A stretch of 64,000 bases of DNA from Tubulanus polymorphus (GCF_964204645.1 NC_134030.1:22218210-22282209), one strand, 5' to 3'; counted from the stretch's first letter, positions 8,551 through 61,000 are shown. Notes: generated by a model from the letters alone, not told the origin. Numbers and translations are program-made.

Positions 8551-9543
8551 CTATCCGCCATGTTTACCAGCTGAGCCCACGCAGCTTAAAGCGCCAGCTC
8601 TGACATCGTTACGGAATGAACTGCTGCATATGAATATGAAAGCGTTGATCCAGTGATTGATGCTGGCGACGTAGAATGCAGCCCATTCTCCCAAATTTAA
8701 AAACTTCGCGTAATTCTGATAAACACAGCTCGTCAAATAGAACATGTACGTTTCCACAAGACTTCCTTTCTCGAACATCAGGAGATAGATGAGGCCTTTT
8801 AGAAACGACAAGAAGAAAAAAGCGACCGATGTAGAAACGACTAAAACTGTGATCTTTTTCGCGGCTGCCTTTTTCTTATCGTCTGCGCCCTGTTGGTTTG
8901 ACATATTCGCCGAGCCGCGAACCCCGTATATGATCGCCCCGTTAGCGATGGCCATCACGAATATCGGTAGATATATATCCATGATATTGTTGTAATGGAA
9001 ATACCACAAGTAGACAGTGTCGTAAGGTATGAGACAGTTTGTGACCGTTCCGTCCATGATGTCCCGTCCTTCGTGTAGCGCCGACCAGACGAGTTGGATT
9101 ATGATCAGTACAGCACTCGTAACGGCTATCGCTCGCTTAGCTCTACCTACAGTGCACAGAGTGGCCGCTTGAAGAGGTTTAGAAACGGCTACAGCGCGAT
9201 CAACCGTCATCAGAACCAGGATCCAAACAGCTATCTGTTTCGGGCAGATAGTATGAAACACTTTGATGATACAACCAGCGCGATTCGATTTGATATGGTA
9301 CAAGTCAATCAAATGCGTTACCGAAATACAGACCATCGCGTACAAGTCAGCCCCGCCCAGAAATAACATGTAGAAATGACCGGCACTGGACGACGCTTTT
9401 TTGTACGTCCCGAAAGCGATCAGAACCAAACCGATCAAACTCAATATCGGGAACGAATAATCTAAGGCGTACATCAATGGATCCAGGTAATGAGTCATCC
9501 AACTCAGGTCTAACATTGGACATCTTGCAGTACTGTTTGCCAT
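8551..9543 (-). CDS. Rhodopsin-like (class A) GPCR, 330 aa, intronless CDS, peptide-receptor/chemoreceptor-like
   Basis: Seven hydrophobic segments. TM2 GADL, TM3 MTVDRAVAVSKPL, Cys in ECL1/TM3 and ECL2, TM7 INHWINAFIF, helix 8 SSSFR, N-terminal NST sequon. Confidence 0.92.
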   Translation of the reverse strand: MANSTARCPMLDLSWMTHYLDPLMYALDYSFPILSLIGLVLIAFGTYKKASSSAGHFYMLFLGGADLYAMVCISVTHLIDLYHIKSNRAGCIIKVFHTICPKQIAVWILVLMTVDRAVAVSKPLQAATLCTVGRAKRAIAVTSAVLIIIQLVWSALHEGRDIMDGTVTNCLIPYDTVYLWYFHYNNIMDIYLPIFVMAIANGAIIYGVRGSANMSNQQGADDKKKAAAKKITVLVVSTSVAFFFLSFLKGLIYLLMFEKGSLVETYMFYLTSCVYQNYAKFLNLGEWAAFYVASINHWINAFIFICSSSFRNDVRAGALSCVGSAGKHGG

Positions 9544-40343: not shown

Positions 40344-43063
40344 CTAAGATAGCAATAAATGTACACTCACTCTTTTTTTGAGTTTGTTAAGTTCTGAGTC
40401 GATGCGGTTTTTCATCATAACTCGGTTGCTGGCTTGGCAACGGAAATACAGGTGAGATAGGTGCGGAAGATTTTCGATTAATTCGACGATTGATTTGACG
40501 AATGGATCGATATCTTCCTGTGTATCAAAGCTCTCTTCGAAAACGTTGAACTCTAACAGACGAAGCAACGAGACGTTTTTAAGAAGTCGTAAGATTTCAC
40601 AATGCTGTTCGGTGCTTTTAAGTGAGCTTGTGATACCGATATTTTTCAGCTGATTTACCGCGTCTGATGATAGATACTGAACAAGTGCTTGGTAATCAGA
40701 CTCTATCTTTACATCTACCGATAAAACAGTCAGCCGCCGCAGGTGAGGCAGAATGCGGCTTTTTTCTAAACTAGATCTGTGACAAGAAAGAAGCTTTAGT
40801 TTCGACATTGAAGCGATGCAATCACTGATTTTTGTCGATTGATCTTTGGTTAGTTGAATCTGATCAAGATGAATTGTTTCGATCTTTGAAGATCTTAAGG
40901 TGCTGTTAAAATCTTCCAAATCTGTATCGGTCATTTCTTCATTGAAAATTCTCCCATAAGGCTTGGATTTCTCTCCGCCTCGAAGATGAATAGCTTTCAA
41001 GTCCGGAATTATCTCTGTCAGCCCGATATGTATAGGTTCATTCGGAGGCACACGGAGATATAGATGCTTTAGGGATGGAGAGAATTTGCGAATATTGCCA
41101 AAAATTTTCCCACTAGCCTCGGTTTTGATGTACAGAATTTCCTCTTTGTATTGTGTGGATGGATCACGAGTGATCGACTGAACGTCATCTTCAGATTCAA
41201 TCAATCGACTCGTTTTTATCCAGTCACAATCGAGTTTCTTGTAACCGATACGGAATTCTCCTTTCAATAGGTCCTCAAACCAGTACATACTGTTGCTCTT
41301 CTGACACAATGCCAAGTACGGATCACTGTCTATTGAACAACACGTCTCCCGTGCGATAATCATACCCTGAAGACGAGTGTTACTCGCTATGGCTGTTTCA
41401 AATGCGCAGTATTCGCCAGTGCCGGATTTCAGTTCGTAACTCATAACTCTTAGATAAACTACCTCGATCGGGCATCGTTTGTGTTCGAGTATTTTTGCTA
41501 GTACATTTATTTGCACGTCGCTAGTTATATTTACAATCAACATTTTTCCGATGTATTGAAATATTTCACTAATGGCGTCGTCCGGACAGTCGGCTTCATT
41601 CAGGTAGATTGACAACTGATCAGATAACCAATAGCTTTCAGATTTGAGTTCGATGTAGCGTTCGTAATCGGGAAGGGCCGCCATCTGGAAACTTTTATCA
41701 TCGTTGATTATATCATCGAAACCTTCCTCATCAATAGTGACTGCTTTTAAATGTTCATCTATTAAAGTCTTGAAAAGTTCACCGAGGCCGCGGTTATACT
41801 TGTAACGATACAGCAGCCCTGCCATGAATCTCGGGTATAATTCACCATATTTCTCAAGTTTGTCCGGTAGTTGTTCAAACGCGCATTTGTCCCAGGGTAT
41901 TTCACCACTGTTGTTGAATTGCACGACCGAGTGTACCGCCGCCAGAAATTCCTGCACAGATTTGTGTATGAACCGTAGCTGGACGGAGCTGTCTGATTTC
42001 CGTCGCGGCGACATCTCTTCGCACGTCAAAGCCGTCCTCTTCGATTCGTCGAGTTTGAGACGATTTTCGCTGAAACTGTTTTGATGCGCGATGAGCGTCT
42101 CATACGCGACTTGACAAATTTCTTCAAGCGCCTCTGAATTTGCGATGTCGCCAAAAAAACATTCCTTCGACAACTTGAAGCCCTCACGTTTACTGATTAG
42201 AAAACATGTCAAATCGATGTAGATATCGGTGAGTTTTGATGGTATCGTAATTTCTTCCTTTTCCATATACAGAAAACAAAACATATGTAGTATCAGCGGG
42301 TTGTAGTAGATACTTTCAAATAAAGGTGGCGCTGCGGTTTTAAGCATGTTGAATAGCTGTTTTGGATCGCGCTTGGGGAATTTTCTCCTCATAATATCGA
42401 TGACTTCTTCCTGTTCGAAGCCGGATATCGATACAACGGTGAATTTGGGATCAGTGACGATCTTGCTGCCCCCGGACTCACGTGTTGTTATGACGATATG
42501 CGCTTTCGGTAATTCTTTGGTCACGTGTACGATGTCTTCCTTCGCTTTATCGTTTTTCAACTCGTCGAAGCTGTCAAGCAAAAATATCGATTTTTCTGCA
42601 TTTTCCTGAACGAATTCTTTAAAACCATCAAACGGCGGCCCGTCTTTTTCGATTACTCGATTCAAAAGATGTTTGTAAATGTACGTATAAATACAAGCGT
42701 TATCAGCGGGCAGTTCATTTAACGGTATATAGAATAACATAGGAAATCTTTTAAGAAACGGTGATCGCTCCCATGACAACACTTGATTAACAATCTGTGT
42801 AGTTTTACCCATACCGGGTTCACCCACGAGGCACACGCGATTCATAGCACGCACGTCATAAGTGAAAAGCTTCTCAAAATCATCGGGTAAAATCACCGAC
42901 TGCTCCTCACTTCCTTGTTTTCGGGGTCGAATTTTTGCGTGTTCTTTGGTAAAAATGTCGTTGAAATTGATAAATTTATCGCTCCACCAAACCTCTTTGT
43001 ACTCTTCAACATCGATCATTCGTTTATAAGTTTCTTCCAGATACCTCCGAACTCGAGTAACAT
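40344..43063 (-). CDS. Terminal exon: NACHT NTPase plus LRR-like C-terminus (NLR-type)
   Basis: Walker A GEPGMGKT, Walker B IFLLDSFDE, sensor 1 IVITTR, NPLILHMFC, winged-helix FIHKSVQEFLAA. C-terminal LxxLxL repeats (LKHLYL, LKAIHL, LKLLSC, LTVLSV, LRLLEF, LSHLYF). Phase-1 acceptor TTTTTACAG| at 43064 with an open frame through to the ORF. Confidence 0.93.
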
Positions 43064-46000
43064 CTGTAAAAACAAAATCAGTTAAGGATTTTTGAAGTTT
43101 AGAGTGATATTAGACATCATGTGTACAAAGTGTAAGATATTGATCAACAGTTGCTATGCTGTTTTTCCCTGGTGATACGCGGGATTTACGCGAAGCAGTA
43201 GAACGCGACCATGGCCACATATTCATTATGTACAGGATATGGAATGAATTTCAATTATTTCAGATGTTAGTGTTTCAATGCACAATATAACTAGATGGTG
43301 TGATATGGCGAAGTAAATAAATGATAATAAAGCTGAGGGCAGTAAAGCTGATGAAGTGTACAGTAGTCAAAAACATATAAAATGGCGTAGTTAGTTACAT
43401 ATAACTATGTGCAGTGAATTGCAGACGAAACATGATGCCTTAATGGCCGTTTACAAAACAGATTATAGCAATCACAATAGATACGCTTTTAATTTGGATG
43501 AACAGTCAACAGTCGACAAGGATTCGCGCCTAGGATTTCGTCCAACCGACTGTGACGGGTACATTTTAAATGAGGGAGAATTGTAAAATAAAGTTGAGAT
43601 AGAACCTTAATCAAAATTCTGTCCATTTCTAAATTTGTTTCGACGTCCTATTTTACTAATTTGTAGTCGTTGTTTTGTAAGAACAATGAGGGGTGGCAGG
43701 TTGTCGTAATAATAAACCAAAAATAAACCTTACTGTCCGTGCCAGTCAAAAGCTATCCAGTGGCGGTTTTAGGATACATCACATGCCTCGCGCGAGGCAC
43801 TCGAAAATCCGAAATTCCCTTCTTGGACCAAGGCAGAAGAAATTCGAAATGGATTTGAAAAGTTTTCAAATGTCAGGCAAAATATCCCGAGTGTTTCGAA
43901 TATTCAATCGCAGGTTATTCGGAGTATTTTATGCCGTAGTGCGTTCGCATAAAAAACCTGCTCAAATAAACCGAATTCTTGAATAAAACTCAAACAAATC
44001 CTCTTTCGTAAAATTCTCAAAAATATGAAACCCACGGCTTTCAACTTTGCGTAACATTCAGAAAAATAGATTACGAAATAATTTTTTCAGTTTTCAATTT
44101 GCCCATTAGTAGTAAAATAACAGGCTATTGAAATTGCGTGTGAGTGCGCTAAAAATAGCTTTTAGCGTAGTGTATCAAGCATAGGAATGATTATCGATCG
44201 GCCAGACCGTTGACATGAGCTACAAATTTTCAATTGATTTCGGTTACAAAATGTCCTCTGGGGGAGTGTATGTATGTGTCCTATGACAGTGCTAATACTT
44301 AACAAATACCAAGACGATAAGTTAAAATCACTTGAAATCTTCTTCCAAAACCGCTTAAGATAAAATTATCAATGATAATAACCTAGAAGATTGACTGATC
44401 AAAAAACCCGTCTGATATGCTAGAGAACCCTTCCCAAAGAATACCCATGATCAATTTCAGCCGTTTTGATTCTGATCGGGCCAGATTTTGAGCCACAGAT
44501 GTTAAACAAAATATTAGTTTGCTCAAACACGAAGACCGTTTTAAAATCCATGGCTCGACGAAAAAATTCAAACTTCATTTTCCATCCTCATTTTCATATC
44601 ATTTATCAAAAAATGTTGATCATGCGTTTAACTGTTCAGTAGAGATAACAGATTAGAATCATAAATACCGGATTAACCTAATCAGGATAAGTTAAATCCG
44701 GGTTTTGACATTTCATTCTGTTACGACTCTTTATCAATTTGTATCTAACAGAATACGATTTTAAATCTGGATTTCTCATAAACCGGATAAATTTCACCGG
44801 TTCCCCCAGTAATCCGGATTAAACCAGTTTAATCATACTTAAAACCACAATTCAACCTTACGAAAATGAAACTTAATTTCATTGAATTGAAACCGGTAAA
44901 AAAATTAATCTTAATTTCATCTCAATCTCGTGGATTAACTTCCCAAACTGTTTAATCTTGATCTTGGATTAAATCAGAAAGTGACGACTGTATAATTTAC
45001 TTACTCGACTCCTCTACCAGGAAACCGAGCTTTTTTAATTCGCCTGAAAAATGAAATGAAATTCATTAATTAGGAATATCATGATAACACTAAATCAACT
45101 TCAAACTTCAACTAGGGGTCCAGGTACACCATGCCCACCTGCGAAGTGGTTTCAAAGCATCCACAATCAATATTCAATATTCAATGCCCCCTGCCGACCA
45201 TACACAAAAACCAATGACATTGAAACTCACCACAATCATAGAACATGTCAGCAGCTTCGATTTTGTAATTGATCGTGATAACAAAATATGCCTGGGTACC
45301 AATATAGGCCTAATAAGGAAATACTAAGTTATTCTACTATTCAACACCCCCTGATAACCATATGTAAAAACTAATGACCTTGAAACTCACCACAATCATA
45401 GAACATGTCATGCGCTACAACTTTGCAATTGATTATGGTAACAAAATATGCCTAGGTACCAATATAATATGGAAAAACATTTTTTTTACCTACGAATGAG
45501 TACTGATGACACCAATATGGCCGCCAATCGTCATAATTGCCTCATCAAATATACCTGTCTCGGGTATAAAACATACCTTTCCAAAGAATACCCATCACAA
45601 ATTGCAATGAGAAATGGCAAACCAGTAGGAAGCTACAGGACTACATTGACATTTTTGGGCACTAAAAAGGTCATAGGACGGCAATCTTGAGTCTGATCGA
45701 CCAGATTTTTCTCATGCTGATGAACCCTTGGGGAATTCAAATATATACGAAAGATCAAGGTTATTGATGAAAGCGTCTTCAAAATTTCCCTCGAAAACTT
45801 CAAACATGTGTAAAAAGTGCTGATTTTGGCGAACAACAATGGCTGCCAGTCGGCCATCTTGATTCTGACAGGGCCAGTATTTAGTGTGAAGATGTGTCTA
45901 GGGTAGATAGATGTGTAACCCAAATATCAAGACATTACCTTGAAGCTTCTTCAAAACCTCCCAAAATAACTGGATTCCGTCTACGGACGGACGACGGACG

Positions 46001-49000
46001 AAAAGTGAACGCAATAGCCCGCTGAAGTCCCAAGTGGGCTAACAAGTAAAGCTTCTACAGACATCATTGATTGTTCCTACAAGTGTTGCATGTATACTGC
46101 TTGTATACAAGGCAAAATGCCCAATCCCTCGAAGAGAGGTACTCATGAGATGTACCAATGAGATGTGCTCATGAGATGTACTCATGATATTTACTCATGA
46201 GAGGTACCCGTACTCACTAGCGCTATGACTCCTCACTATTTCAATGCAATCACCCAAACATTTGTCAACTGAAATGAAAACAAATAGATAAGTAAATAAT
46301 TTAAGTTGATACGAACTGTGACCAAAGAGTGACGACTTAAAACACTCATTAGTTTAACTCTTAAAATCTGTGTCCACGTGTATTATGTGCAAGGTGCAAT
46401 ACAATTACATACATATGTTGATCTAGGTGTACATTTATATGTCATGATTGATGAATATAATCTTCAATGAATTCAACGCCACAGTTTTCTTAATCTGAAA
46501 AATGAGTTGTTATTGTATTGATATTCACCTGTTTCTGTCAGTTCAGTTGTATTTGTTTCACTGTCAATTTCATCTCCTATTCAAACAGAACAAACAATTA
46601 TTATTCAAAACCTGAAAATCAGATCATTTAATAAAACGTTCAGTGAAACAAAAATTCACTATTTACCGAAACATTCTTGGACTTGTTTCCAATAACCTGT
46701 GTTTGTCTTTAAAGTTTTACTGGTAAATTTACTGAGTTCAGACACTATATGTAATAAACAATAGACAAGTTTTTATACAATAGAATTCTATTATAAATCA
46801 CAAACTGATTTCACTGTGGGTTAGCGGTAAAAATCCCCTTGGTAAAAATTCCCTCCTTTTGAATGCAGTCTAAGTAGATGCAATCATATTTCATATAATT
46901 GATACATAGATCGAATTTATTCATATTTTATTGTGAAACACCATTAGGATATCGTGAGCATACAAACTATTGTATATACTATTTGAATTAAAACATAAAA
47001 CGAATAAACGGTTCATTAATACTAAATTGGTACCGTACTTAAAGTTATCGCAGTTAATGAAAGGGTTCATCGCACATTTCAAACATATTACACTAGCTTG
47101 AATCTAAAATATTCCAAATTAAAAAGTTCATTTTTTCTAATAATTCATGGCATCGCGCTGCTCAAATATACCACAAGTTACCAAAAGTTCACAGTTAAAG
47201 AAAAATTTCCAGTTCGATTTTTACCTAGGGGATTTGTGAACTTACTCGCGCGAGATATATCATATTCCCACTGTTTTGATGACGAACTGCTGCGAGCCTC
47301 TTTACATTTCTCTTTTAAAATAGTCTCTAGTGAATCTGTAATTATACAATGTTTCGATGTTCGAGGAGCAAAGAAAACTTAGATCCATTGTCGACACCAT
47401 TGTTACATAGGGTACAAATAGGTTCCTCTCTAACTGTATTATCCCATCTCCCAGTTTCCACCGGAAACTTGTGGTTGCATGTTCTGAATATTATATGGTT
47501 GTCTGGTATATTAGATATTAAGTATGGTTTAGTACTAAATCCTGCTTGAATGAACTGTAGTACGAGCCTTTGGAAGAGATAGAACATAATCAACTCCTCC
47601 ATCTCAGCAAAAAATGATCTCTTAATCTCTGGCGAAGAGATACTTTTGGGAATTGGGAATAATTGGCTTAGTATTGAACCAATAGTATATAAAATGTTTT
47701 TGATATTTACAAATTTGCAATTGTTTTTGATACTTCTTTTTTTGTGTAGGCCATAAAGAGCTTGATAGATTGCCCCTGATCTCCACCCTTACTCAGTACC
47801 AGTCGACCTTCACCCTTACTCAGTACCAGTCGACCTTCACCCTTACTCAGTACCAGTCGACCTTCACCCTTACTCAGTACCAGTCGACCTTCACCCTTAC
47901 TCAGTACCAGTCGACCTTCACCCTAACTCCCGGTACTGATTTAATTTGTTAATTAAAACACCTAACAGTCAACAGTATTCACCTTTAAATCCCGGGATTC
48001 TGTTTGCAATAATTTGTTTGATATGAAACACTGAAAAAGAATAAACACAATAGATTACTGCAGGGTCAGAGAAACATGTTCTATGTCTTTTTAATAGCTT
48101 GTTCTACGGGGTAAACCTATTAAAATATCATTTCGGAGGAAATAAGAATTTAAATAAAAATTCCCTTAGTAAGATTAAAATCAGGATGAGGGAACTGTCG
48201 ATAGGGCAATATATGTTCAAACAAACGATTCTTGGAAAGTTCGAATTATTCACACTGTGATCAAAAAAGAACCTCGCGTATTTCAAATTTCATCATTCGG
48301 TGGAGGTGAACAAATTCTTTTTGCTCGTTTTTTCACTGAATTCGTCCCACAATTATTTTAATTTGACTTTTCTTCGGAGGCCATAAACCAAGCTTCAAAA
48401 AAGGCCCAAACCAGAGAATAGATATTGAATGTTTATAAAAGGCTCGCAGTATTGAAGATCAGTGAGGAATATCTGTTACTCTGACATTTCAAGCAGAAAA
48501 CTTCTATCCATCTTCAGAGATCTATATTCAGCTTCGAAGCCACTACTTTTGATTTCGAGTCACCACGAAGACAGTAATATTCCCCCAAAACTGTAAAACA
48601 AGCTGCAATTCAACCTGCAGGCTATTTGCATGAACTTAGGAAGCATTTCAGTTTTAAGCGTTCTGAACAGCTATGCTGGACTTAATAGAGCTGTGTAAGA
48701 ACCACTATGTGACGTCACATCTTAAATAGTTGAGACTACTTTCAGTCTTGAATATCATGAAGAGAAAAACCCACAATATAGATCTAAAACACCAGCTCTT
48801 GTTTTTTCTTAACGCTGTTTCATCTGGTTGTGTCCTATTAATATCCCTTCAGTAGAGGTTCCTGGTGTGACACTCCCTACTTTAAACCATACTTCAAATA
48901 AACTCTTAAGATGGGCGGAAGAATTCCACCCAAAACATTAACACTAAAAAACAAGAGCGCTTATTTTAGATCTGTATTGTGGGTTTTCTCTTCACGACAT

Positions 49001-52000
49001 ATCATATCATTCATTGATTAATTAGATAAGTCTTTAACATGTAAGTTGTTATCAGTACTTACTCGCTATTTCATCTTTAGCTGAAACACAGAAAACAACA
49101 ATGACTTACGAATAAACATTAAGTAGATCTAAACAGTTACATTCATACAGTTCACTTAAACAGTATGTAATTAATTCTACATAATTCTTTGTTATTTTGG
49201 TCTCAATTAAAAGTGTAATCAGAATTGATTTATTTGTAATATCATTGCACTTTAAACTTCAACCTTGAATTTTACTCACTACTATAGACTACAATTCCTC
49301 GTTTCTTTAATTCCACTGAAATCACAAATAGAAATTGAATATGAATTCAGCAATAAATCAATCCGCGATGAAAAGTGAAACAATACTTATCAGCTTCAAA
49401 ACGTTTTACATGGACATTTGACACGAAAATGCGACATGTGACATGTGAATAAATTACGAACATGTCGATGAAGATGTTTTATCTAACTAAATTGAGCATT
49501 TGACCCTACATGAAACGTGTAACCATGTATAATTTGGGAATATGTGTTTGTTATATGTTTGTGCACATGTGCATGTTACATATAATATATATGAGCATTT
49601 TGTATGTATATACGTTTTTACATGCATGTATAATTTGATATATAAAATTGATATTTACTTTCATTCATATCAGTGATATATTTAAACGCCTGACAAACTG
49701 AACTGTGAATTATTCTGTTCAATTCCTCCTCATTTTTTCTCTCTTCATTTTCCTCTTGTTTCAGTTTCTCTTCGAGTTCTTTCAGAAATCTTTCAGCTCG
49801 TCCAGCGTACAATTCTAAAAGTGATTCACCGTGAAAACAATGAGAAATTGAGATCCACAAAACCTTGAGATTGAAAAATGATGGAATAAACCCTGCTGAT
49901 TCTGATGCAATCCTTACATAGACCTCGTACCTTTGGTAGATTCAATAACTGCGATTTTCAATTTAATTTCTGAAAAAAAGAATATAATTCATGACTACAA
50001 CACAGCATCCACTACTGGTGACATCAACACATCTATTTTAATCTATCCAAATATTTGAAAGAAGTTCTGTTCCTGTTTCTGGTTTATCAGAAAATCATGT
50101 AAAATCATAATGACTATAAAATATCGTTTAAAGTGCATCGTTAATTGCTAGCCATTTGTTTTTAAGCGTCTGCTTTCGACCCTTGACCTCAATAGTCATA
50201 GTTTATTACTATGAGTTTCTTACCTAAAACATTTCGGCTTATTTTATAAATACCTGAAAAAACAGTTGAACAACTAGATTAACACATCAGAAACTGATTT
50301 CCAAAAATGCCACATTCTGACAGAAATCCACCCCATTAGGCTCCGAGCCCCCTGGGCCATCTTTTAATGATGTTTATTTACCGGGTATTATCAGAGCCAC
50401 TACATTGGAATCCAATATGCATGAACCAAAACATAAGTTTTTTCACGCTGTTATTAATTTTCAGAAAAAGATACAGCAGCTTTCTTGGATGCAGCAATTT
50501 AGATATTTTTGGAACCACCCACTAGAGAAAGGGACGGCTCCTAATACGTACTACGATTGATTTTGAACAGACAGTGGAACCAATGATATTGCGTGGCTTT
50601 CTCGTTTAAACGCGACTGATTTTTAATAGATGAACTCGGTCTGAAGAATATTCACATCGATACAAATTGTGATCTAGCAATATTCTTAGTTTCCGCATCG
50701 ATTGCCACCGTGCAATAACCTATACTTAATAAGTGGCTCTGAATCAAAACAGATGCCTTTAACAATCTGATGACATGATCATCAAATAAGTCAGCTCAAA
50801 GCACAAAGATTGTTTACACTTACTTTTATCTAGTTCTGTAGAATTGTTCTCTTCTAATATCTGCAAACTTGACTCCGATAAAACTGATTCTACAAATAAA
50901 TACATGAGTAAAATAATGCAATAGCCCGATGCGACTAAGTCTCAAGTTCAGGGAAACCGCGCCACTTTGGGAAGAGAGTTGAAATGCACAACAATCAGAA
51001 AATCTTAATATTCAACGCCCCCTGGCGATCATATAAAGAGATGAATGACCTAGAAACTCACCACACATTTCCATAGATCGCGTTATGAGCTACAATTTTG
51101 AAATTGACTGGTATAAGTTTTGAAATTGACTGGTATAAGCCTTTCATTTCTTTTACTTCTATTTGATTTTACGGCAGAGTCGACATACAATTATGTCCCG
51201 AGAAAAAATGTCATTTTGCTTATAATTCATTGCATCGCACAGCTCAAATACAAGTAAACAAGAGTTCACAGTTAAAAGATAAAGCTAACAAGAGTTTACA
51301 GTTCCGAATTTTAAGACATTACTAATAAAAAGTTCAATTATTATTATTAATTCTAACAATTTAAGAGTTTACTTAAGAATTTATCCCAACGAAAGATTTC
51401 ATTGCACAGTTCAAACATATTTCAGTCTCATTGCTTTGAAATGTTTTTGAAAATCACCAAGTGTAAATAAGAATATCAGGTCCAATGTTAATAAATTCTT
51501 GGCTTACTTCTCCTCATATTTCCTTCTGGCATCTTTACCTCTGGCATTTTTACCTATGGTGGAATTTTTCCTCTGGCATTTTTACTACTGGTATTAAAAC
51601 CTATGGCATTTCTACCTCTGGCATTATTATCGCGTACCACAAAAAACCAATGACCTCGAAACTCAAACACAATTATACAACGAGCTTCGACGATTGATTG
51701 TAGTTACAAACTACGCGTAGGTGCCAATTGGCAAATTGTATATTATTCAATATTTAACTCCCCCTGGTGGCAAAAACAAAACATTGACTGATTCCAAATT
51801 CCATGTAAGGAGATGAATGCCAATAATAATCAAATATAAGCACATCATTAATAAAACTTAAAACCGGTTGTTGTTTTCCTGAAAAAAAAAGTTTTCCATT
51901 TAGAAATGAGTACTGATGACGCTGAGGTTGATATTGACCAGATCAGTCAAAACAGGAATTTCATATTGCATTCGTCATGAAGTGGATTAATTTAATTGTT

Positions 52001-55000
52001 GACAATTATTGTTCCACATTACCAGGTAGCTAGTTTTATTGCACCTCAGATCTCACATTAACCAATTATATGAAGATATTAGCAAAACGAAGACATTTTA
52101 ATTCTTACCACAAACATCTTTGTTCGAAAAACGGTACTGGTCGGCCACTCCCATTTCTGTAACACAGAATATCAAGACAGTAATATTTACATTTATTTAG
52201 GAGTTTCATAAATACAATTTTATGACAATATCTGAATAAATGGTAGATACTCTTGCAACAAACCTTTCTGTGTTTCATCGCTAACCTTCTTTTTATCTAT
52301 TTGTCTGACGAGGTTTTCTGTAATTAAACAAAATGTTTAACACGTTTATAATTGTCAGCCCCCCCCCCTGATAGATGAACTGAAAACTCACCATTCTGTT
52401 GTTTAACTTCTTTATTAAGTGTTTCCTTAACAAACTTTTCTATAAAAAGATACAGTGATATATCAGTTATAATTGAACAGCCTCAGCACCAGTTTAAACA
52501 TCATAGTGAATATTATAACTTACCAGCAATTTCAACAGTTGCTGAAATATAACGTAAAAGTGTTTGAAGAATATATTTCGCACATGACTCTGAAGTACAG
52601 ACAACTCGCATGTACATGTAACTCAGTTGTACATGTATGTACAGAGAACTAACTTGCACATGTACAATAGATTATAAAGCACATGTATTTTACAAACAGT
52701 TGTGGATAAATGAGAATTAAAACCTACGTTTTATGTTGGCTATTCCTCGTTCACATAATTCAGCATCTACAGTAAAAATAAACACAATCAATTATTCAAT
52801 GATTTCACAACAAACTCCACAGTATTTTTACTGAAATGATTTATGGAACCTACCGGACATTTTAGCAAAGTAATCAACAATAGATTCAACTGCTGAACCA
52901 ACTGAAAATATAGAAATTCATTATTACCGTTTACTGGAGAGAAAGCTGATTTTTTTTCGAAGGAAATACATTTTTCAACCAGAAAGACTTTTTCGTCAAA
53001 AGTGAACAATTTTTAGTAGTAATTCCAAATTATAGTACTACGAAGACTTTTTAAAACTCGTTGGAATCCTGTGTAGAGAAGCACATATAAAAGTAGAACT
53101 CAAGATAGGCTACAATTCATAGTTTTACAGACCATTTTTGATAAACTCTTTCTCTTTGTTTGTAAGGGGTCTTTTCTCTTCATTCGATTTGTCACTCAAA
53201 CTAACATGAACTTCATCTGAAACACGTTAAAACATGAAACACTTGATACATAATGTTTCTCGTCAAGTCGTGAGTTGATTTATCCAGAAAAAAAAACTTC
53301 ATTCTTTGACGACGAAAGATTTACAAGATGAACTGCAACTATTTTTATGCTGCATGCTACTACTAGTTTGTATCAAATCTTACTTAATTTGTCTCTTTTA
53401 TTCTGGATTGTATATATGTCTCATAATTTTGCCATAACTTAAGTACTCCTCATGATTACAATTAAGATAAATCGGGATAAAATAAAAATGACAAATAACA
53501 TCTCAACTCGAAACCTGATTTCTAAACCCTCTACCAGCCACTTCTATCAGGATTATGTAATATGGTATTCTGGAATAGTTAGAGTCTATACTGGTAGAAA
53601 CGAATAATATGGAATTCTGGAATCTGTAGAATTGCAACCTGCCAAAAGACTGGCGGCAATCTTGAATAACTTCGTCACTTTTCGAACACAGCTGAACAAA
53701 CTGATCTATCGACAGTGGATGATAATCCGGTAGAGACCAATCAAAGTCTAAACGACTGCCATCTTTTCAAATCAGATTTTCCATATTTCCAGAAGGGTGC
53801 ATAGATGGGTGTATAGCTGTACAAAATGATCTATCAAACAGTGAATAATAACGATACCTTCATCTCTATTGTAAACTGCATCAGCGCCATCTATTGACCT
53901 CTTCTCGTTCAGTAATGTATCTGTAATACATTTACAAAATGAGTTGACAGTAGAATAATAATCAATAAACTCATACATCAATAACTGTATTCAATCAACT
54001 CTTACCGATCTCATTTGATAGTTTCATTTTTAAATTCTTTATTCTAAAGTATTTTCCTGTCAATAGATAATTATAAACACATTTGAATCGATGATTCGAG
54101 TTGAAGAGGAAATATTGAGTCGTTTCGTAAACTTACTTAGGATTTCTTTCACCAAATCTAACATACCTGAAAATACATTGATCAAACTCTACTTAAACTT
54201 AAACACATGTGCATGTAGACAAATCACATGTGCATACACACTTCACATGTCATGTGAACTGCTCACGTTTATTGACGTGTGCACTTACGTGCAATCATGT
54301 ACACCTATGTTAACTTACATGAACATGTTTCCGCAACTCACAACTTACTATGTATCAATCAAATGTCAATGCACACATAACTCACATGCGCATGTTTACA
54401 TACATCACATGCGCATGTGTACATGAACTTAAAACAAACTATAGGTAAACAATAACTTACTTTGATCATGTGATAACCGTTGGAACAGGTATTCTCTGAT
54501 AGCTATTGCTGAAATGAAATATAGAAAGCATTTGTTCAATATTTGAATAAACTGTGCATCAAACAGTTTGAATTACTGCTGGATGAAGATAGGAGGCAGA
54601 TGTGTCATATTTAGAGACAGACAGTATCCATGATTGGAACCAACCAACGAAAGCTGTTCCAGTTCTGTTCCTCCCTGGCATCAGAGACCCACATCACCTC
54701 AAAACTTACTCTCACTACTCTTACCTCTCACTCCTCTTACCTCTCACTCCTCTTACCACTCACAACTCTTACCACTCACTACTCTCACCTCTCAATACTC
54801 TTACCACTCACTCCTCTTACCACTCACTACTCTTACCACTCACAACTCATACCACTCACTACTCTTACCTCTCACTACTCTTACCTCTCACTCCTCTTAC
54901 CTCTCACTACTCTTACCACTCACTCCTCTTACCTCTCACTCCTCTTACCTCTCACTCCTCTTACCTCTCAATACTCTTACCACTCACTCCTCTTACCACT

Positions 55001-58000
55001 CACTACTCTTACCACTCACAACTCATACCACTCACTACTCTTACCTCTCACTACTCTTACCACTCACTGCTCTTACCACTCACTACTCATACCACTCACA
55101 ACTCATACCACTCACTACTCTTACCACTCACTCCTCTTACCACTCACTCCTATTACCTCTCACTACTCTTACCACTCACTACTCTTACCACTCACTACTC
55201 CTACCATTCACTACTCTTACCTCTCACTACTCTTACCACTCACTACTCTTACCAGTCACTACTCTTACCACTCACTACTCTTACCAGTCACTCCTCTTAC
55301 CAGTCACTCCTCTTACCACTCACTCCTATTACCTCTCACTACTCTTACCACTCACTACTCTTACCACTCACTACTCTTACCACTCACTACTCTTACCACT
55401 CACTACTCTTACCTCTCACTACTCTTACCACTCACTCCTATTACCACTCACTACTCTTAACACTCACAACTCATACCACTCACTTCTCTTACCACTCACT
55501 TCTCTTACCACTCACTACTCTTACCACTCACTACTCTTACCACTCACTACTCTTACCAGTCACTACTCTTACCAGTCACTACTCTTACCACTCACTACTC
55601 TTACCACTCACTACTCTTACCACTCACTACTCCTACCACTCACTACTCTTACATCTCACTCCTCTTACCACTCACTACTCTAACCACTTACTACTCTTAC
55701 CACTCACTACTCATACCACTCACTACTCTTACCTCTCACTACTCTTACCACTCACTACTCTTACCACTCACTACTCTTACCTTGTTTATCCTTATCTCTC
55801 GTTATCTCCCAATCATTCTCAGTTTCGTAAACATCGCCGATTATTCTAACAATTTCTATAAAACAAAAGTCTATTATATTATTTACTGTTCAAATGTTTC
55901 AAAGACCCGAAAGTTTAAACAGATCAAAGTAACAGACAACACAAATATTGCTACAGATATTTGAACAAGCTCCAATGTTGTTAAGTGGTTATCTTGGGGA
56001 ACAGAACTCTAGTCAGCCATCTTGATTCTGATTGCATCTAGCATGAATTCAAGGGTTTATGACTACGGTTGTGATAATGAAGCAATATCTGTTGCATATA
56101 ATTCAGGGCCCGGTTTTATAGACTGGTATTAACTTAAACCCGGGGTTACCTCAATTCATTTTCAATTCTGTTAACCCCTGGGTTAAAGATAATACCATGA
56201 GTCTGTAAAACCGGGCCCTGGTGTTTAGTGAATGAGTTTTGAAACTATGAACTGTATTCATGTAAGATATTCTACATGTTATAGAAATAAAGGGTTAATA
56301 ATTCTATAAATACCTGGCTGCAGTTGGTCACGTGTTTTCATCCAATTCTCATGATCTACAAAGAGAAAACAACACCTAAACATTATCAAACCGATATCTG
56401 AGAATATGTGCAGTAAATCATGTGAGAGAATCTTACCTTTTTCATACCAGGTTTCACTTGTCCAACGCAACAATTCATTCACGTCTTCAGGTTTCGGACC
56501 CAAACGCGGTACTGTTAATTAGAAAATAGAAATACTGTTTATTTACACGATGCACGTTCACCTGACAAATCAACCCAATAAAGAAACAGTGTTATTTGGA
56601 TAATGTTGGAGCCACCCACTAGAGATAGGCAATGGACCTAATGCTATGATACTGCAATACTTTCTTGGCGCAACAGATTTTATACATGTATCTACCCTGT
56701 ACATCATGATAGTAGTGCAGTATCCACAGGGTCCAGTTCCACAGTTCCGAATTAAGATTTAACTCTGATTTAACTAATTGAAAATGAACTAACTTTAACT
56801 CAGAGTCAACTCTAACTCACATCTGTGGAACTGGGACTTGGTCTTTCCAGACGAACTCGGTCTATATTCACGTCTATACAAACTGTGACCTAGGAGTGAC
56901 GACTTCCGAACACTCTTAGTTTGGACACTTAAACATGAGCAAAATATGCATGACTATAAAGCTGTCGATGACTACACAGTTTTTATGACTAGGGACACCA
57001 CGCCCACTTGGGAAGTGCTTTAAAATGCTCAAAAATCTGACCATTTCAATATTCAACGCCCTCTGGTGAACATGTAATGAAACCAATGCCCTTGAAACAC
57101 ACCACAATCATAGAACTGGGCCTTTGAAAGATACACATATATAGACCAAGATAATTGATCAAAGCGTCTTCAAAATGTCCCTGAAAACTTCAAAATGTGT
57201 AAAAAGTGCTGATTTTGGCGAACAACAACGGGTGCCAGTCGGCCATCTTGATTCAGATCGGGCCAATGTTTGGGCTGAAGATGTATTAGGTTAGATGCAA
57301 GCCAAATATCAAGAAAACTTCCCAAAATAACTGGATTCCGGACGGACCACGGAGGATGAAAATTGAATGCGATATATATATTGTTCTCTTTTTCCATTGG
57401 AATTTTCTGGAGTTTCAAAATCTATAACATTTTTTTAATGTTTTCCAAATTTTTCATGTCGTATGAAATTGGCTGATCAAAAATACCTGTCTCAGCTATA
57501 GATGATCCCTTTCCATAGAATAGCCACCACAAATCAGATCTTTATTTACAAAGAAATTATAACAAGTTATACAAAAACCCAAAGGGACCCAAAAATAACC
57601 CAAAAATAAAGAAATTAAAGGGTCTTCAAAACTTCCCAAAATACTGGATTCCGTCTACGGACTGACGGACGGACCAACGGAAGGACGACGGACGAAAAGT
57701 GAACGCAATAGCTCGCTGGTCCCAAGTGGGCTAAAAAGGCAAAAAAAAGATTAATGTTTAAAATTTGTTAATTAACGGTTTTAGTTCTGTGGCCTATCTA
57801 ACAGCTTAAGACCAGTCTAAGTTCATTTTGGTTTCTATAACCGATCTAACAATTTAAGACCAGTCTCAACTCATTTTGGTTTCTATAACCAATCTAACGA
57901 TTTAAGACCAGTCTAAGAGTTTACGACCACTTTTTGAATAAGACTCTGCAACTAGGGTCCCGAAATTTAACATTTTGACTGATAATCGAGAATCAACTGC

Positions 58001-61000
58001 GTACCACCTTGGGACCCTTGACTCCCTATAGCCTTGTAAACTATTTTTTCATTTTAAGCATTATGTATAATGAATTATTACAGGACTTACAATTTCCACA
58101 TCTACACAGTTGATCATCAGGTTTTCTGCACCGCACTGTCAATTAGAAATATTAGTATTTTATTTCAACAGTTTGTCTGTTATTGTTTTTCAGATTAAAT
58201 GATGGTTTTATGTAAAACTTACAGCAGTCATGACGCCACAGTATAAACAGTATTATCAGAATCAGTAATATCAGTAATATACCGATCACAGCACCAGCCA
58301 CACTGCCTCCACCATGATCTAAAACTAATCGATTTATTATATATCAATCAGCAATTGATTTCACAGCGTTGATATTATTTATCTATTTAGGACTAGCCTC
58401 AAATAATTGTTTCATAACCAAAATCAACCGTGATATACATCGGTGGTTTAGGATTTTTAGAGTATGTTGGTTGATTTTGACTTCAGGGACAAAATTCTAT
58501 CAGTCTGTACTCAGTATTCAGATAAAATCCGGTGATTTCTGACCAACGTGGAATCTTACCTGGTTCATCAGTTGGACCGGCGTTATGATAACCAGCGACA
58601 TCAATGACCCTTTCATTAATACCGTCAGCCAAACACCGCCCTCTATAGTCAGTTGTGGTACTATTTACGATAGGAATCGTTATATTCCACTGATAGTTTG
58701 ATAGTTTTTGAACGACAGCTGGAGGGTCACATGTAACTTGTTGAGTCAATGGGTTACTATTAACTGTTACATTATACGCCGCGTGTGTTTCATTTTCACT
58801 GGATTTCTTGTAAACTGGTGCAAAATCTGTTTGAAAAATACAAAAGGTGAAGGTTGAATCTGACAAATATCTGGCCTAGCGGAGTTCTGAACCCCTGTCA
58901 CAGGAGCCATGCTCCCTTGGCAGGGATTCGAACTTGATGGCAAATATAATACGGCGCAGCAATATTATCTATTAACGTTCGTAGGAACAACAGTTATGTT
59001 TTTTGCATAAATCGCGTAAAGTAGCAGGGAATTCTTTTTTAACTGTTATTCTTAGGTTGATTGCTTAAATTCGACAGATAAATCTGTTACTTACAATGAA
59101 CAACGATTGGATTAAATTGTCGAGGTTCTGGAAACGTAAGGTTCTCCTTTACAGCACATCGAAATGACGTTCCATTGTGCAGTTTGAAATCAGCTTTGAA
59201 CTTGTAGGTCGTGTCAAAACCTTTTAAATGCCCTTTGCGAGGTACTTTACGAGGTTGTGGATCAGGAATTGGCTGCCATTGTTCAGAACCTCTTCTCTTC
59301 TGCTGGTATATCACTGTAGGATCGGGCCTCCCGCCTTCTGTTCTACAAATATATTTTACAACTTCTCCTTCAGTTCTAATGTCAGGTTGTCCGGTGAGAT
59401 TACCTTGTGTTTGAATTTCATCGGGAAAATCTGAAAAGATAAAGATGTAAATGTATTTTTGGATGATATCATATTTTGGACGATCAAATTCATGAATAAC
59501 GGGATAAATACACTGTAGCTCAGCTCTCATGCGCGCCACGTTATTTGCTTGTTAGGCACCGTAAGATATGGCAGGGGAATTCATATGTGGACACCCGTTT
59601 GAATGTTAAAACTCAAACAAGAATTCAGACTGATATCGTATGGAAATTCTCCGATGACAATACTATACAACTTACACGTAACATCCATTTTAGTTTGATG
59701 TAGTATTTGATTTTGAAGTGGTCTCGGTAATATTAAACCATTGTATCTCCTCAACTGACATTGAATCAATGTTGCGTAAATCATGTATCTATAATCCATC
59801 TGATTCCTGTTGATAACTCCATCTTTCACCGCAGTATTTACACCTTGCTCATGGATATTTACAATATCCGTTGAACCTTCAGTAAATCCATCAGCATACC
59901 ATTTTACTTTGATGTTTTGATTACCGATCTTACTAGTGGCTTCACAAGTACAAGACAGTGATTGGAATTGAGCCACCTTACACGGGTTTTCATTTATCCC
60001 TATACCTACAACAAATTTAGATGGAAACATTTACAATTTACCAGATTCCGTGGAACTGGAAAACTAGGGGCCCAGGGACACCAAGCCCACTTGGAAGTGG
60101 TTTCAAATGCTCAACAATCTAACAATTTCAATATTCAAAATATGGTAACAAAATATGTCGAGCGACCAATATAATAAGGAAATACTAAGTTATTCTACTT
60201 TTCAACGCCCCTGGTGACCATATAGAATAACTAATGACCTTGAAACTCACCACAATCATTGAACATGTCATGAGCTACAACTTTTCAAACTACGAATGAG
60301 TACTTACGACACCAAGATGGCCGCCAATTGCGTCATAATTTGCTGATGAAAAATACCTGTCTCAGGTATAAAAGACCCCTTTCCAAAGAATACCCATCAC
60401 AAATTGCAATGAAAAATGGCAAACCATCAGGAAGTTACAGGACTGAGAATCAAGGTTAAAATTGACATTTTTGGGCACAAAAAAGGTCACAGGACGGCCA
60501 ACTCGAGTCCGAGTGACCCAATTTTTCTCATGCTGATAGACCCTTAGAGGATACAACTATATCTGAAAGATCAAGGTAATTGATAAGCGTCTTCAAAATT
60601 TCCTTCGAAAACTTCAAAGATGTGTAAAAAGTGCTTCTTGGGCTGAAGATGTGTCTAGGGTAGATACATGCATAAATGAAATATCAAGAAATTACCTTGA
60701 AGCGTCTTCAAAACTTCCAAAAATAACTGGATTCCGTCTACGGACGAAGGTCCGTACGAACGGACGGACGGACGGACGACGGATGAAAAGTGAACGCAAT
60801 AGTCTAAAGTCCCAAGTGGGCTAAAAAGGAGATTAGATCTTAGACGATTTGTTTGTTTTTCAAAAGGACTCAAAACCTAGAGGTCGATAGAGTGTATAGT
60901 CGAAATTGATTGGCACAAATGCTTATATGATTCTATCAAAATGAAGATTTCAATAGTTCTATTGTTGAATACATGAAACTCAGAAACACTTGAAACTAAA

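Follow-up and report, generated by a model that had tools for sequence, protein, structure and literature searches.

Why should the cytoplasmic side of a transmembrane receptor be encoded by a long run of very short exons, and is the protein segment encoded by them a mere linker or a module of its own? These questions are raised by LOC141906708 of Tubulanus polymorphus, whose RefSeq product, XP_074652115.1 (P0154), was mapped exactly on the minus strand of the window, i.e., the whole 64,000-nucleotide stretch of DNA that was analysed; the joined protein sequence used here is RefSeq's own. The protein consists of a signal peptide, many immunoglobulin (Ig) domains, one transmembrane (TM) helix, a tail of 489 aa, and the product of a NACHT exon, which ends the protein. 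The Ig domains give weak Pfam matches (Ig_2, I-set, C2-set), at or slightly under the curated cut-offs. The NACHT domain (Pfam PF05729) is found with E = 8e-17 on the open reading frame of the exon and E = 2.7e-16 on residues 1563-1718 of P0154, and is followed by a weak NLRC4_HD2 match. The terminal coding exon (40344-43063), which has more than 20 paralogous genomic copies, comprises a phase-1 acceptor, NACHT, about 650 more residues, and the stop codon. The TM exon (58223-58324, 102 nt, phase 1-1) encodes a hydrophobic stretch with basic residues after it, and it is kept in the paralogues C6a and C6b. This mapping bears out the location of the segment given in a preliminary description of this DNA, namely on the cytoplasmic side, after the TM helix and before the NACHT domain, in a protein of Ig-TM-NACHT architecture.

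The TM and NACHT exons are separated by 27 exons, which range from 18 to 156 nt (median 48) and add up to 1467 nt; their outer limits, 58135 and 45005, match those described previously. All 27 have a length that is a multiple of three, phase-1 introns on both sides, and AG..GT borders; phase 1 is kept throughout, from the Ig exons to the NACHT exon inclusive. Directly downstream of the TM exon, exon 1 (45 nt, 58091-58135) encodes a Cys/Arg-rich juxtamembrane motif, 79-93% identical at the amino acid level in the NACHT paralogues C6a and C6b. The positions of exons 2-27 come from the RefSeq mapping, supported for most of them by comparison with two other loci (locA and locB). Exons 2 (75 nt, 56437-56511) and 3 (42 nt, 56314-56355) have equal-length AG..GT counterparts with nucleotide identity of 92% and 98% in locA and 91% and 90% in locB, respectively. 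The donor of exon 4 (75 nt, 55781-55855) is the opening unit of a tandem array with about 67 units of 16 nt (54711-55781), which occupies the 5' end of intron 4 and carries the donor-like GGTAAGAGT in each unit. The same two-locus comparison supports exons 4, 5 (48 nt, 54461-54508), 6 (30 nt, 54137-54166), and 7 (51 nt, 54006-54056); exon 8 (63 nt, 53858-53920) has a locA counterpart of equal length and 100% nucleotide identity. It further supports exons 9 (84 nt, 53133-53216), 10 (48 nt, 52854-52901), 11 (39 nt, 52728-52766), near which P0001, the RefSeq model for paralogue C19, starts, 12 (18 nt, 52524-52541), 13 (48 nt, 52392-52439), 14 (54 nt, 52264-52317), and 15 (48 nt, 52109-52156). For exon 16 (66 nt, 50824-50889), homologous residues are present in the family alignment A1. 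Exons 17 (30 nt, 50224-50253), 18 (39 nt, 49931-49969), and 19 (156 nt, 49659-49814), the last being the largest and encoding a charged helical segment, are again recovered in the locA/locB comparison. Exon 20 (36 nt, 49280-49315) is followed by exons 21 (18 nt, 49063-49080), 22 (48 nt, 47983-48030), 23 (90 nt, 47246-47335), 24 (78 nt, 46667-46744; 97% nucleotide identity in locA), 25 (48 nt, 46529-46576; also supported by locA/locB), 26 (51 nt, 46218-46268), and 27 (39 nt, 45005-45043), whose donor, GTAAGT, is spliced to the NACHT exon. Exons 21, 22, and 24-27 are additionally supported by the comparison with C19.

The preliminary description held that the shared phase and the divisibility by three go beyond chance, and an unbiased scan for strong sites agrees with it: 25 multiple-of-3 AG..GT pairs are open in the phase-1 frame of the minus strand, compared with 9 and 4 in the other two minus-strand frames and 1 on the plus strand of the region, although the tandem repeat accounts for part of the donor excess. 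Two sequencing runs from two studies, X1 and X2, are RNA-like, with deep exon bins and intron bins near zero. Contigs of both contain the exact GT..AG junctions of exons 26 and 27 (45043|46218) and of exon 27 and the NACHT exon (43063|45005), and the exact junction of exons 22 and 23 (47335|47983) is present in X1 contigs. The RNA reads covered exons 22-27; the junctions of exons 1-21 and the link from TM exon to tail have the RefSeq model and homology as their basis. It is confirmed that 45005-58135 on the minus strand contains 27 real, expressed, phase-1-symmetric exons of LOC141906708. The count of about 26 exons needs correction: 25 of the 26 proposed lengths are right, but the bracketed exon of 36 nt is really exon 8, of 63 nt, since the earlier reading ended it at an internal GT, and the 90-nt exon 23 was missed. 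The length of the segment is 489 aa rather than the proposed 450 or so.

That this segment is a mere linker is not supported. BLASTP aligns the tail with those of at least 13 NACHT-less Ig-TM proteins at 61-78% identity; the alignments span linker residues of about 10-485 or 10-369, and the lowest E values reach 0. These receptors (LOC141906693, LOC141906794, LOC141907883, and others, all 'uncharacterized' in RefSeq) share with LOC141906708 not only the homologous tail but also the lengths, phases, order, and splice sites of the micro-exons, the TM/juxtamembrane exon, and exon 27 with its donor. Equal-length AG..GT exons, in order and with 78-100% nucleotide identity, were found in one NACHT-less and one second NACHT-linked locus; at a threshold of at least 70%, 24 of the 27 exons have such counterparts in locA and 21 in locB. 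Exon 19 is present in 18 copies in the genome, the other 17 showing 87-96% amino acid identity (87% in a copy located on a different chromosome and 88-96% in the others). A lineage-restricted family of approximately 15-18 Ig receptors has both the tail and the micro-exon structure in common, most members lying in tandem on the same chromosome. Homology searches with tail regions returned no homologue outside Tubulanus, so that the tail is a protein module without detectable relatives beyond T. polymorphus in the searches made; as these were bounded by word sharing and length windows, its absence elsewhere is not proven. The nearest NACHT matches outside Tubulanus are only about 29% identical.

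Within the tail, a family HMM detects a unit of about 117 aa, with 35 occurrences in 15 proteins; it emerged only with that HMM, and a BLAST of the tail against itself shows no internal repeat. Exons 2-19 form the membrane-proximal part of the tail; one such unit, which begins with exon 20 and extends to exon 26, comes next, and the conserved exon 27 of the family completes it. NACHT-less relatives have one to five units, no NACHT, and mostly a short Ser/Asp-rich C-terminus, whereas in LOC141906708 there is one unit, a group of exons downstream of the 156-nt exon is missing, and the NACHT exon is appended.

How did these parts come together? Exon 27 and its GTAAGT donor are the same in a NACHT-less relative, where they lead to a short C-terminal end. 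In LOC141906708 the same donor is joined to the NACHT exon instead of the short C-terminal exons of the family, and the NACHT exon elsewhere follows short, unrelated linkers (about 45-170 aa in other NACHT paralogues); the gene is thus an exon-shuffled fusion. Likewise, the homology of the tail to those of NACHT-less receptors, including their repeat unit, indicates a phase-1 mosaic of an Ig-TM-tail gene and a NACHT exon. Because all exons are in phase 1, any two of them can be joined in frame, and because this phase extends from Ig to NACHT, the whole 27-exon tail of a different receptor family could be inserted before NACHT without loss of frame. The arrangement of exon 27 and NACHT also exists in copies on contigs C19 and C9. 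When six NACHT paralogues were compared with the window at the DNA level, the matches were mainly dispersed repeats, and C19 alone was collinear, from 49154 downwards. Taken as a whole, the reading of this Ig-TM-helical tail-NACHT protein as an exon-shuffled fusion carrying a conserved tail module, likely a scaffold or adaptor, is one we consider probable. Either a tail gene gained NACHT or a NACHT gene gained the tail. To our knowledge, transmembrane Ig-NACHT receptors are barely known, with one studied example, from a sea cucumber; if the fusion reading is correct, then LOC141906708 is a case of such a receptor assembled purely by exon shuffling.

AF2 models of the whole tail (15-row family alignment) and of the 117-aa unit with exon 27 (35 rows) are all-helical, the former with a helix at residues 275-350, but their confidence is low (pLDDT 43.7 and 49.5, respectively) and no fold is therefore established. 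Pfam finds nothing in the tail, a profile search of PDB sequences gave one chance match (E = 0.91), and an ESM Atlas feature search gave no usable match. A complex prediction for two copies of linker residues 255-372 scored 0.00, which is no verdict and not evidence either way. The dN/dS ratio between paralogous exons, computed per exon on whole codons, suggests weak protein-level constraint or diversifying selection; alternatively, dS may be low through a splicing constraint on micro-exons. The 489 aa form a conserved, predicted all-helical cytoplasmic tail module and not an ad hoc spacer.

The preliminary description proposed that combinatorial splicing could vary the distance from the membrane to NACHT or the interaction surface, as a possible means of diversification inside the cell. 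On this view the array is a tunable spacer whose exons are skipped in frame, which is supported by the symmetry of all 27 exons, any subset of which can be skipped in frame, by the 156-nt exon, whose charged, Glu/Lys/Arg-rich helix is of the rigid-ruler type as judged from the sequence and the AF2 helix, and by the relatives: in RefSeq isoforms of 9 of 11, single tail micro-exons are dropped or shortened in frame. What is skipped is a single micro-exon (18, 36, or 45 nt) or, in one case, a block of 90 nt. Among these are the homologue of exon 1 (45 nt), which is a cassette exon of LOC141906884, and that of exon 20 (36 nt), which two relatives use in this way. That symmetric exons permit in-frame skipping is correct. 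However, there are one or two events per gene in the relatives, not combinatorial use. The three RefSeq isoforms of LOC141906708 are identical in the tail, their differences being confined to Ig ectodomain blocks, and no exact junction skipping an annotated exon is present among the best 15 of 177 joints, which concern exons 22-27. Searching the window introns with family tails (tblastn) revealed no credible hidden cassette exon (all E > 0.1, most with in-frame stops) and no relic of the 45-nt cassette exon of many relatives. Moreover, each exon is kept in length and sequence over about 18 gene copies, for which a defined domain is the better fit. Large-scale combinatorial splicing is not indicated; variation arises mostly between gene copies, by gain and loss of exon groups, and less by splicing, and we regard the tunable spacer as unlikely.

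Conservation also bears on a further proposal, that after the fusion the tail became a tolerated tether, relaxed and nearly neutral, whose sequence is drifting. A dN/dS of about 0.8 against three paralogues would fit it, as would the lack of a confident AF2 fold and the fact that other NACHT paralogues manage with their much shorter linkers. Nevertheless, all 27 frames are open with intact splice sites, and in the comparison with C19 the six exons keep their splice sites and contain no gap in 282 columns (84% identity), whereas the introns between them are riddled with 3695 gap columns (73% identity). The arrangement is preserved in at least two more NACHT-linked copies (C19 and C9), and many Trp, Cys, and hydrophobic positions are invariant in alignment A1. 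Near-neutral drift is, in our opinion, improbable. Still less credible, to a degree that leaves it hardly any weight, is the suggestion that the annotation pipeline merged a neighbouring Ig-TM-tail gene with a NACHT gene. Tandem genes can be merged by automated models and the tail family usually ends without NACHT, but the exact exon 27-NACHT junction, GT..AG, occurs in contigs from two RNA-like runs of two studies, the NACHT exon opens with a phase-1 acceptor and is not preceded by a start codon of its own, and the model of C19 has the same join.

A function for the tail can be proposed. In canonical NLRs, a CARD, PYD, DD, or TIR precedes NACHT, i.e., a separate N-terminal module common to NACHT-less proteins, following a homotypic-adaptor logic which LOC141906708 resembles, although the latter is membrane-anchored and has an Ig ectodomain. 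Pfam finds no CARD, PYD, DD, TIR, or BIR in the whole of P0154 and no LRR C-terminal to NACHT (E <= 0.1 in both cases), and the micro-exon tail holds the place of the former. The tail would occupy the position of the effector or adaptor domains of NLRs, most likely as a helical scaffold positioning the NACHT ATPase beneath the membrane, and possibly also linking NACHT to the partners through which NACHT-less receptors signal. The symmetry of the micro-exons would serve mainly to let gene copies gain, lose, or duplicate groups of exons in the course of evolution; skipping of single exons also occurs occasionally. In a bolder version, which we consider doubtful, the tail would be a new homotypic adaptor/effector module, functionally analogous to the death fold, by which at least three NACHT-bearing Ig receptors assemble with the NACHT-less ones, about 15 in number, that have the same tail. 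Which receptors are coupled to the NACHT switch would then depend on the copy number of exon groups and on the regulated skipping of individual micro-exons (e.g., the homologues of exons 1 and 20). If true, this spiralian would possess an NLR signalling system that is both transmembrane and splice-tunable.

Titin PEVK and similar arrays also have many short exons in a row that preserve the frame and encode a non-globular segment; they serve as adjustable springs, whose length can be changed by exon skipping or duplication. PEVK is of low complexity and extensively differentially spliced; the Tubulanus tail, in contrast, shows no repetition at the level of exons, each of its exons is conserved, and no differential splicing of it is annotated in LOC141906708. 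Closer in exon size are the micro-exon genes (MEGs) of schistosomes, with symmetric micro-exons of 3-81 bp (bioRxiv 10.1101/2023.06.21.545858): 24 of the 27 tail exons are of at most 81 nt and all are symmetric. Both are lineage-specific multigene families with runs of short symmetric exons in which in-frame skipping is possible. Past exon size and symmetry, kinship with MEGs in sequence or architecture is not supported, and the homology searches show no sequence similarity. MEGs encode small secreted proteins almost wholly by micro-exons, whereas in LOC141906708 the micro-exons form a cytoplasmic segment after the TM helix that makes up 489 of the 2393 aa; the Ig exons, like the 2.7-kb NACHT exon, are large. 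The Tubulanus array is a second, independent case of a long symmetric micro-exon array in a putative immune-type family, here on the cytoplasmic side. The system allows one to test whether such arrays are for splicing diversity or for modular evolution in the germline, the alternative favoured by the present evidence. With respect to architecture, a comparison can be made with AjNLRC4 of Apostichopus japonicus, reported to be a membrane pattern-recognition receptor, with Ig and NACHT, in which the TM (483-503) and NACHT (600-757) are about 100 aa apart and a second TM is present (PMC8699970). Like LOC141906708, it has extracellular Ig domains, a membrane anchor, an intracellular NACHT, and no CARD or PYD, but in LOC141906708 the gap between TM and NACHT is filled by the 489-aa module encoded by 27 exons. 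As the two phyla are far apart, an independent origin is likely. As a separate observation, the residues past NACHT in LOC141906708, approximately 650 in number, look Leu-rich and periodic by eye only.

In the window (C6:22218210-22282209 of the 268-Mb assembly searched), the NACHT domain lies in an 891-aa ORF on the minus strand (40344-43019; Pfam E = 8e-17), and Ig-like exons at 58.5-64 kb stand upstream of the tail and NACHT in the same gene. A HMMER search of the whole library with the NACHT ORF as query retrieved RefSeq models of paralogues, and a second search retrieved the window gene, LOC141906708 isoform X2 (XP_074652115.1, 2393 aa; hereafter P0154). This model is already present in RefSeq, labelled "uncharacterized", and a literature search on LOC141906708 found nothing. 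Exact spliced mapping of P0154 onto the window places the TM exon at 58324-58223 and the beginning of the terminal NACHT exon at 43063, both on the minus strand. Between them stand 27 tail exons with lengths, from TM to NACHT, of 45, 75, 42, 75, 48, 30, 51, 63, 84, 48, 39, 18, 48, 54, 48, 66, 30, 39, 156, 36, 18, 48, 90, 78, 48, 51, and 39 nt (median 48 nt; 18 of the 27 are 51 nt or shorter), separated by introns of 74 to 1941 nt. All 27 are divisible by 3, their introns are phase 1 throughout, and their total of 1467 nt encodes 489 aa, residues 999-1487 of P0154. The preliminary description, made from the sequence alone, had given 25 of these lengths correctly, but it listed exon 8 as 36 instead of 63 nt and missed exon 23 (90 nt); the micro-exon-coded linker that it proposed is real, although 489 rather than ~450 aa long. 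It listed lengths without coordinates; the first (58135-58091, 45 nt) and last (45043-45005, 39 nt) exons that follow from its outer limits, both on the minus strand, are bounded by textbook splice sites, with a pyrimidine tract, AG, exon, and GTAAGT. Most of the chain also came up in a crude scan for splice sites, every time open in the phase-1 frame. An unbiased count in the tail region of strong AG..GT pairs that are open and divisible by 3 in length gave 25 in the minus-strand phase-1 frame, 9 and 4 in the other two frames, and 1 on the plus strand, bearing out the view that such symmetric, same-phase exons exceed chance.

The exons were also traced in transcripts and paralogues. Reads of four runs were aligned to window positions 42150-48149, covering exons 22-27 and the start of the NACHT exon. 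Two of them, X1 from a 2024 study and X2 from a 2014 study, are RNA-like, with deep exon bins and intron bins at zero or near zero. The exact joints 43063|45005 (exon 27 to NACHT) and 45043|46218 (exons 26 and 27), with minus-strand GT..AG ends, were found in contigs of both runs, and 47335|47983 (exons 22 and 23) in contigs of run X1, which gives junction support at these three places. Extra letters separate the two sides of the joints near 46268|46529 and 46744|47246; those of the first resemble the C19 paralogue, and for this reason these contigs may be paralogue-derived. C19 shares 81% aa identity with the window gene in the NACHT exon, and its RefSeq model (P0001) holds homologues of exons 11-27. 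In the six 3'-most exons compared (21, 22, and 24-27), AG and GT are conserved, with no gaps in 282 columns and 84% identity; the introns between them contain 3695 gap columns and show 73% identity where aligned. Most of the 27 exons have collinear AG..GT counterparts of equal length, at 78-100% nt identity, at a NACHT-less locus (locA, C6:21.82-21.86 Mb) and a NACHT-linked one (locB, C9:0.305-0.325 Mb). The C19 homologue of the 156-nt exon is 153 nt long (53857-54009) and is separated from the next downstream exon (~36700) by ~17 kb, compared with 343 nt in the window; the C19 intron therefore contains a large insertion.

The tail is best read as a module conserved in its family and acquired through exon shuffling. 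For searches, its spliced sequence was taken from the RefSeq protein as deposited, not from our own exon joining. With the tails of P0001 and of P0157, a NACHT-less relative, as queries, 13 further "uncharacterized" Tubulanus proteins of 1038-1750 aa were found, all of which combine an Ig ectodomain and one TM with a long tail but lack NACHT; the matches included no relatives outside Tubulanus. Nearly the entire 489-aa tail of the window gene aligns with the membrane-proximal part of the NACHT-less tails, at 61-78% identity. The 156-nt exon has 18 genomic copies, the other 17 at 87-96% aa identity to that of the window; most are tandemly arrayed on the plus strand of the same chromosome (21.69-22.10 and 22.77-22.83 Mb). 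A family HMM identified a ~117-aa unit occurring 35 times in 15 proteins, with one to five per tail; linker residues 353-468 (exons 20-26) are a single copy of it. The window gene is without the exon block that follows the 156-nt exon in relatives and without a 45-nt cassette exon, and no relic of either was found in its introns. The true family is that of the micro-exon-tailed Ig receptors of Tubulanus polymorphus, a palaeonemertean ribbon worm.

The NACHT-less locus has the same exon 27 with the same GTAAGT donor, which there leads to short C-terminal exons; in the window gene and C19 it leads to the NACHT exon. The NACHT paralogues P0002, P0004, and P0155 have unrelated short linkers of roughly 45-170 aa, and the TM exon and micro-exon 1 are common to them and the window gene. 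Every exon from the Ig domains through NACHT is phase 1, so that such exon mosaics stay in frame. The most plausible reading of the window gene is that exon shuffling fused an Ig-TM-tail gene with a NACHT exon. The C-termini of 7 of the 13 NACHT-less relatives (P0157, P0158, P0161, P0162, P0164, P0165, and P0167) are conserved and Ser/Asp-rich, with a terminal T-Q-V or T-V-V resembling a class-I PDZ-binding motif; in the window gene, the NACHT exon replaces this end.

The window gene combines two known kinds of design, a membrane Ig-NACHT receptor and a micro-exon array. The sea-cucumber membrane receptor AjNLRC4 likewise has Ig outside, a TM, and NACHT inside, without CARD or PYD; however, ~100 aa lie between its TM and NACHT, compared with 489 aa here (PMC8699970). 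The exons of schistosome MEGs (3-81 bp, symmetric) are similar to the tail array in size and symmetry, but MEG products are small and secreted (bioRxiv 10.1101/2023.06.21.545858), and no sequence similarity between MEGs and the window gene was found.

The preliminary description had suggested that combinatorial splicing could vary the intracellular side. The segment does lie in the cytoplasm, and in principle its exons can be skipped; however, it is a module conserved across the family, and no combinatorial splicing is seen in LOC141906708. The three isoforms in RefSeq (X1/P0170, X2/P0154, and X3/P0169; 2601, 2393, and 2282 aa) show no variation in the tail and differ only by Ig-domain blocks, of 208 aa between X1 and X2 and 319 aa between X1 and X3; the annotated splicing variety is therefore extracellular-side. 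Substitutions at residues ~40-240 of isoform X3 are consistent with the use of another copy of the repeated Ig exons. Among relatives, the tail differs between RefSeq isoforms in 9 of 11: in most cases single micro-exons (6, 12, or 15 aa) or 30 aa are missing in frame, or alternative splice sites are slightly shifted. The skipped exons include homologues of exon 1 (LOC141906884) and exon 20 (LOC141906794 and LOC141906847). Pipeline-annotated isoforms of this kind are normally backed by transcript evidence. In-frame skipping thus occurs in the family, but each gene shows just one or two events. In RefSeq isoforms of three relatives (LOC141906946, LOC141907917, and LOC141906974; P0181, P0188, and P0173), the TM exon itself is skipped in frame (24-33 aa), so that these Ig receptors are predicted to have forms without a membrane anchor.

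Regarding structure, AF2 predicted both the tail (pLDDT 43.7) and the ~117-aa unit (pLDDT 49.5) as helical throughout with low confidence. No relatives of the tail were found in Pfam, PDB sequences, or Atlas. Exon-by-exon comparison with three paralogues gave dN/dS of ~0.8 with dS of 0.12-0.22. This ratio reflects either protein-level selection that is relaxed or diversifying, or a dS that may have been lowered by splicing signals inside the micro-exons.

Several repeats accompany the exons. Intron 4 holds a 16-nt tandem array of ~67 units (54711-55781, minus strand), the start of which coincides with the micro-exon 4 donor. On the minus strand its unit carries GGTAAGAGT, with 37 exact copies compared with 0.39 expected, and the donor-like units therefore amount to ~67 potential decoy 5' splice sites after the 75-nt exon; the matching locA intron has only ~306 nt. 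Just upstream of the Ig exon at ~61769, an 82-nt tandem repeat (61707-62301, minus strand; 7.3 copies, 97% match) combines in each unit the acceptor TTTCAG with the initial 57 nt of this exon and a GT, so the 5' end of this exon and its acceptor have been tandemly amplified; the array is also present in paralogue C6a. A dispersed repeat occupies introns at 45171-46048, ~57050-57740, 51010-51110, and 60140-60830, as well as introns of paralogues, and is likely a high-copy mobile element because its summed contig depth in the aligned runs exceeds that of its flanks by a factor of hundreds. Unconnected with the tail, an intronless 330-aa ORF at 8551-9543 on the minus strand carries a rhodopsin-family 7TM domain (Pfam 7tm_1, E = 6e-19).
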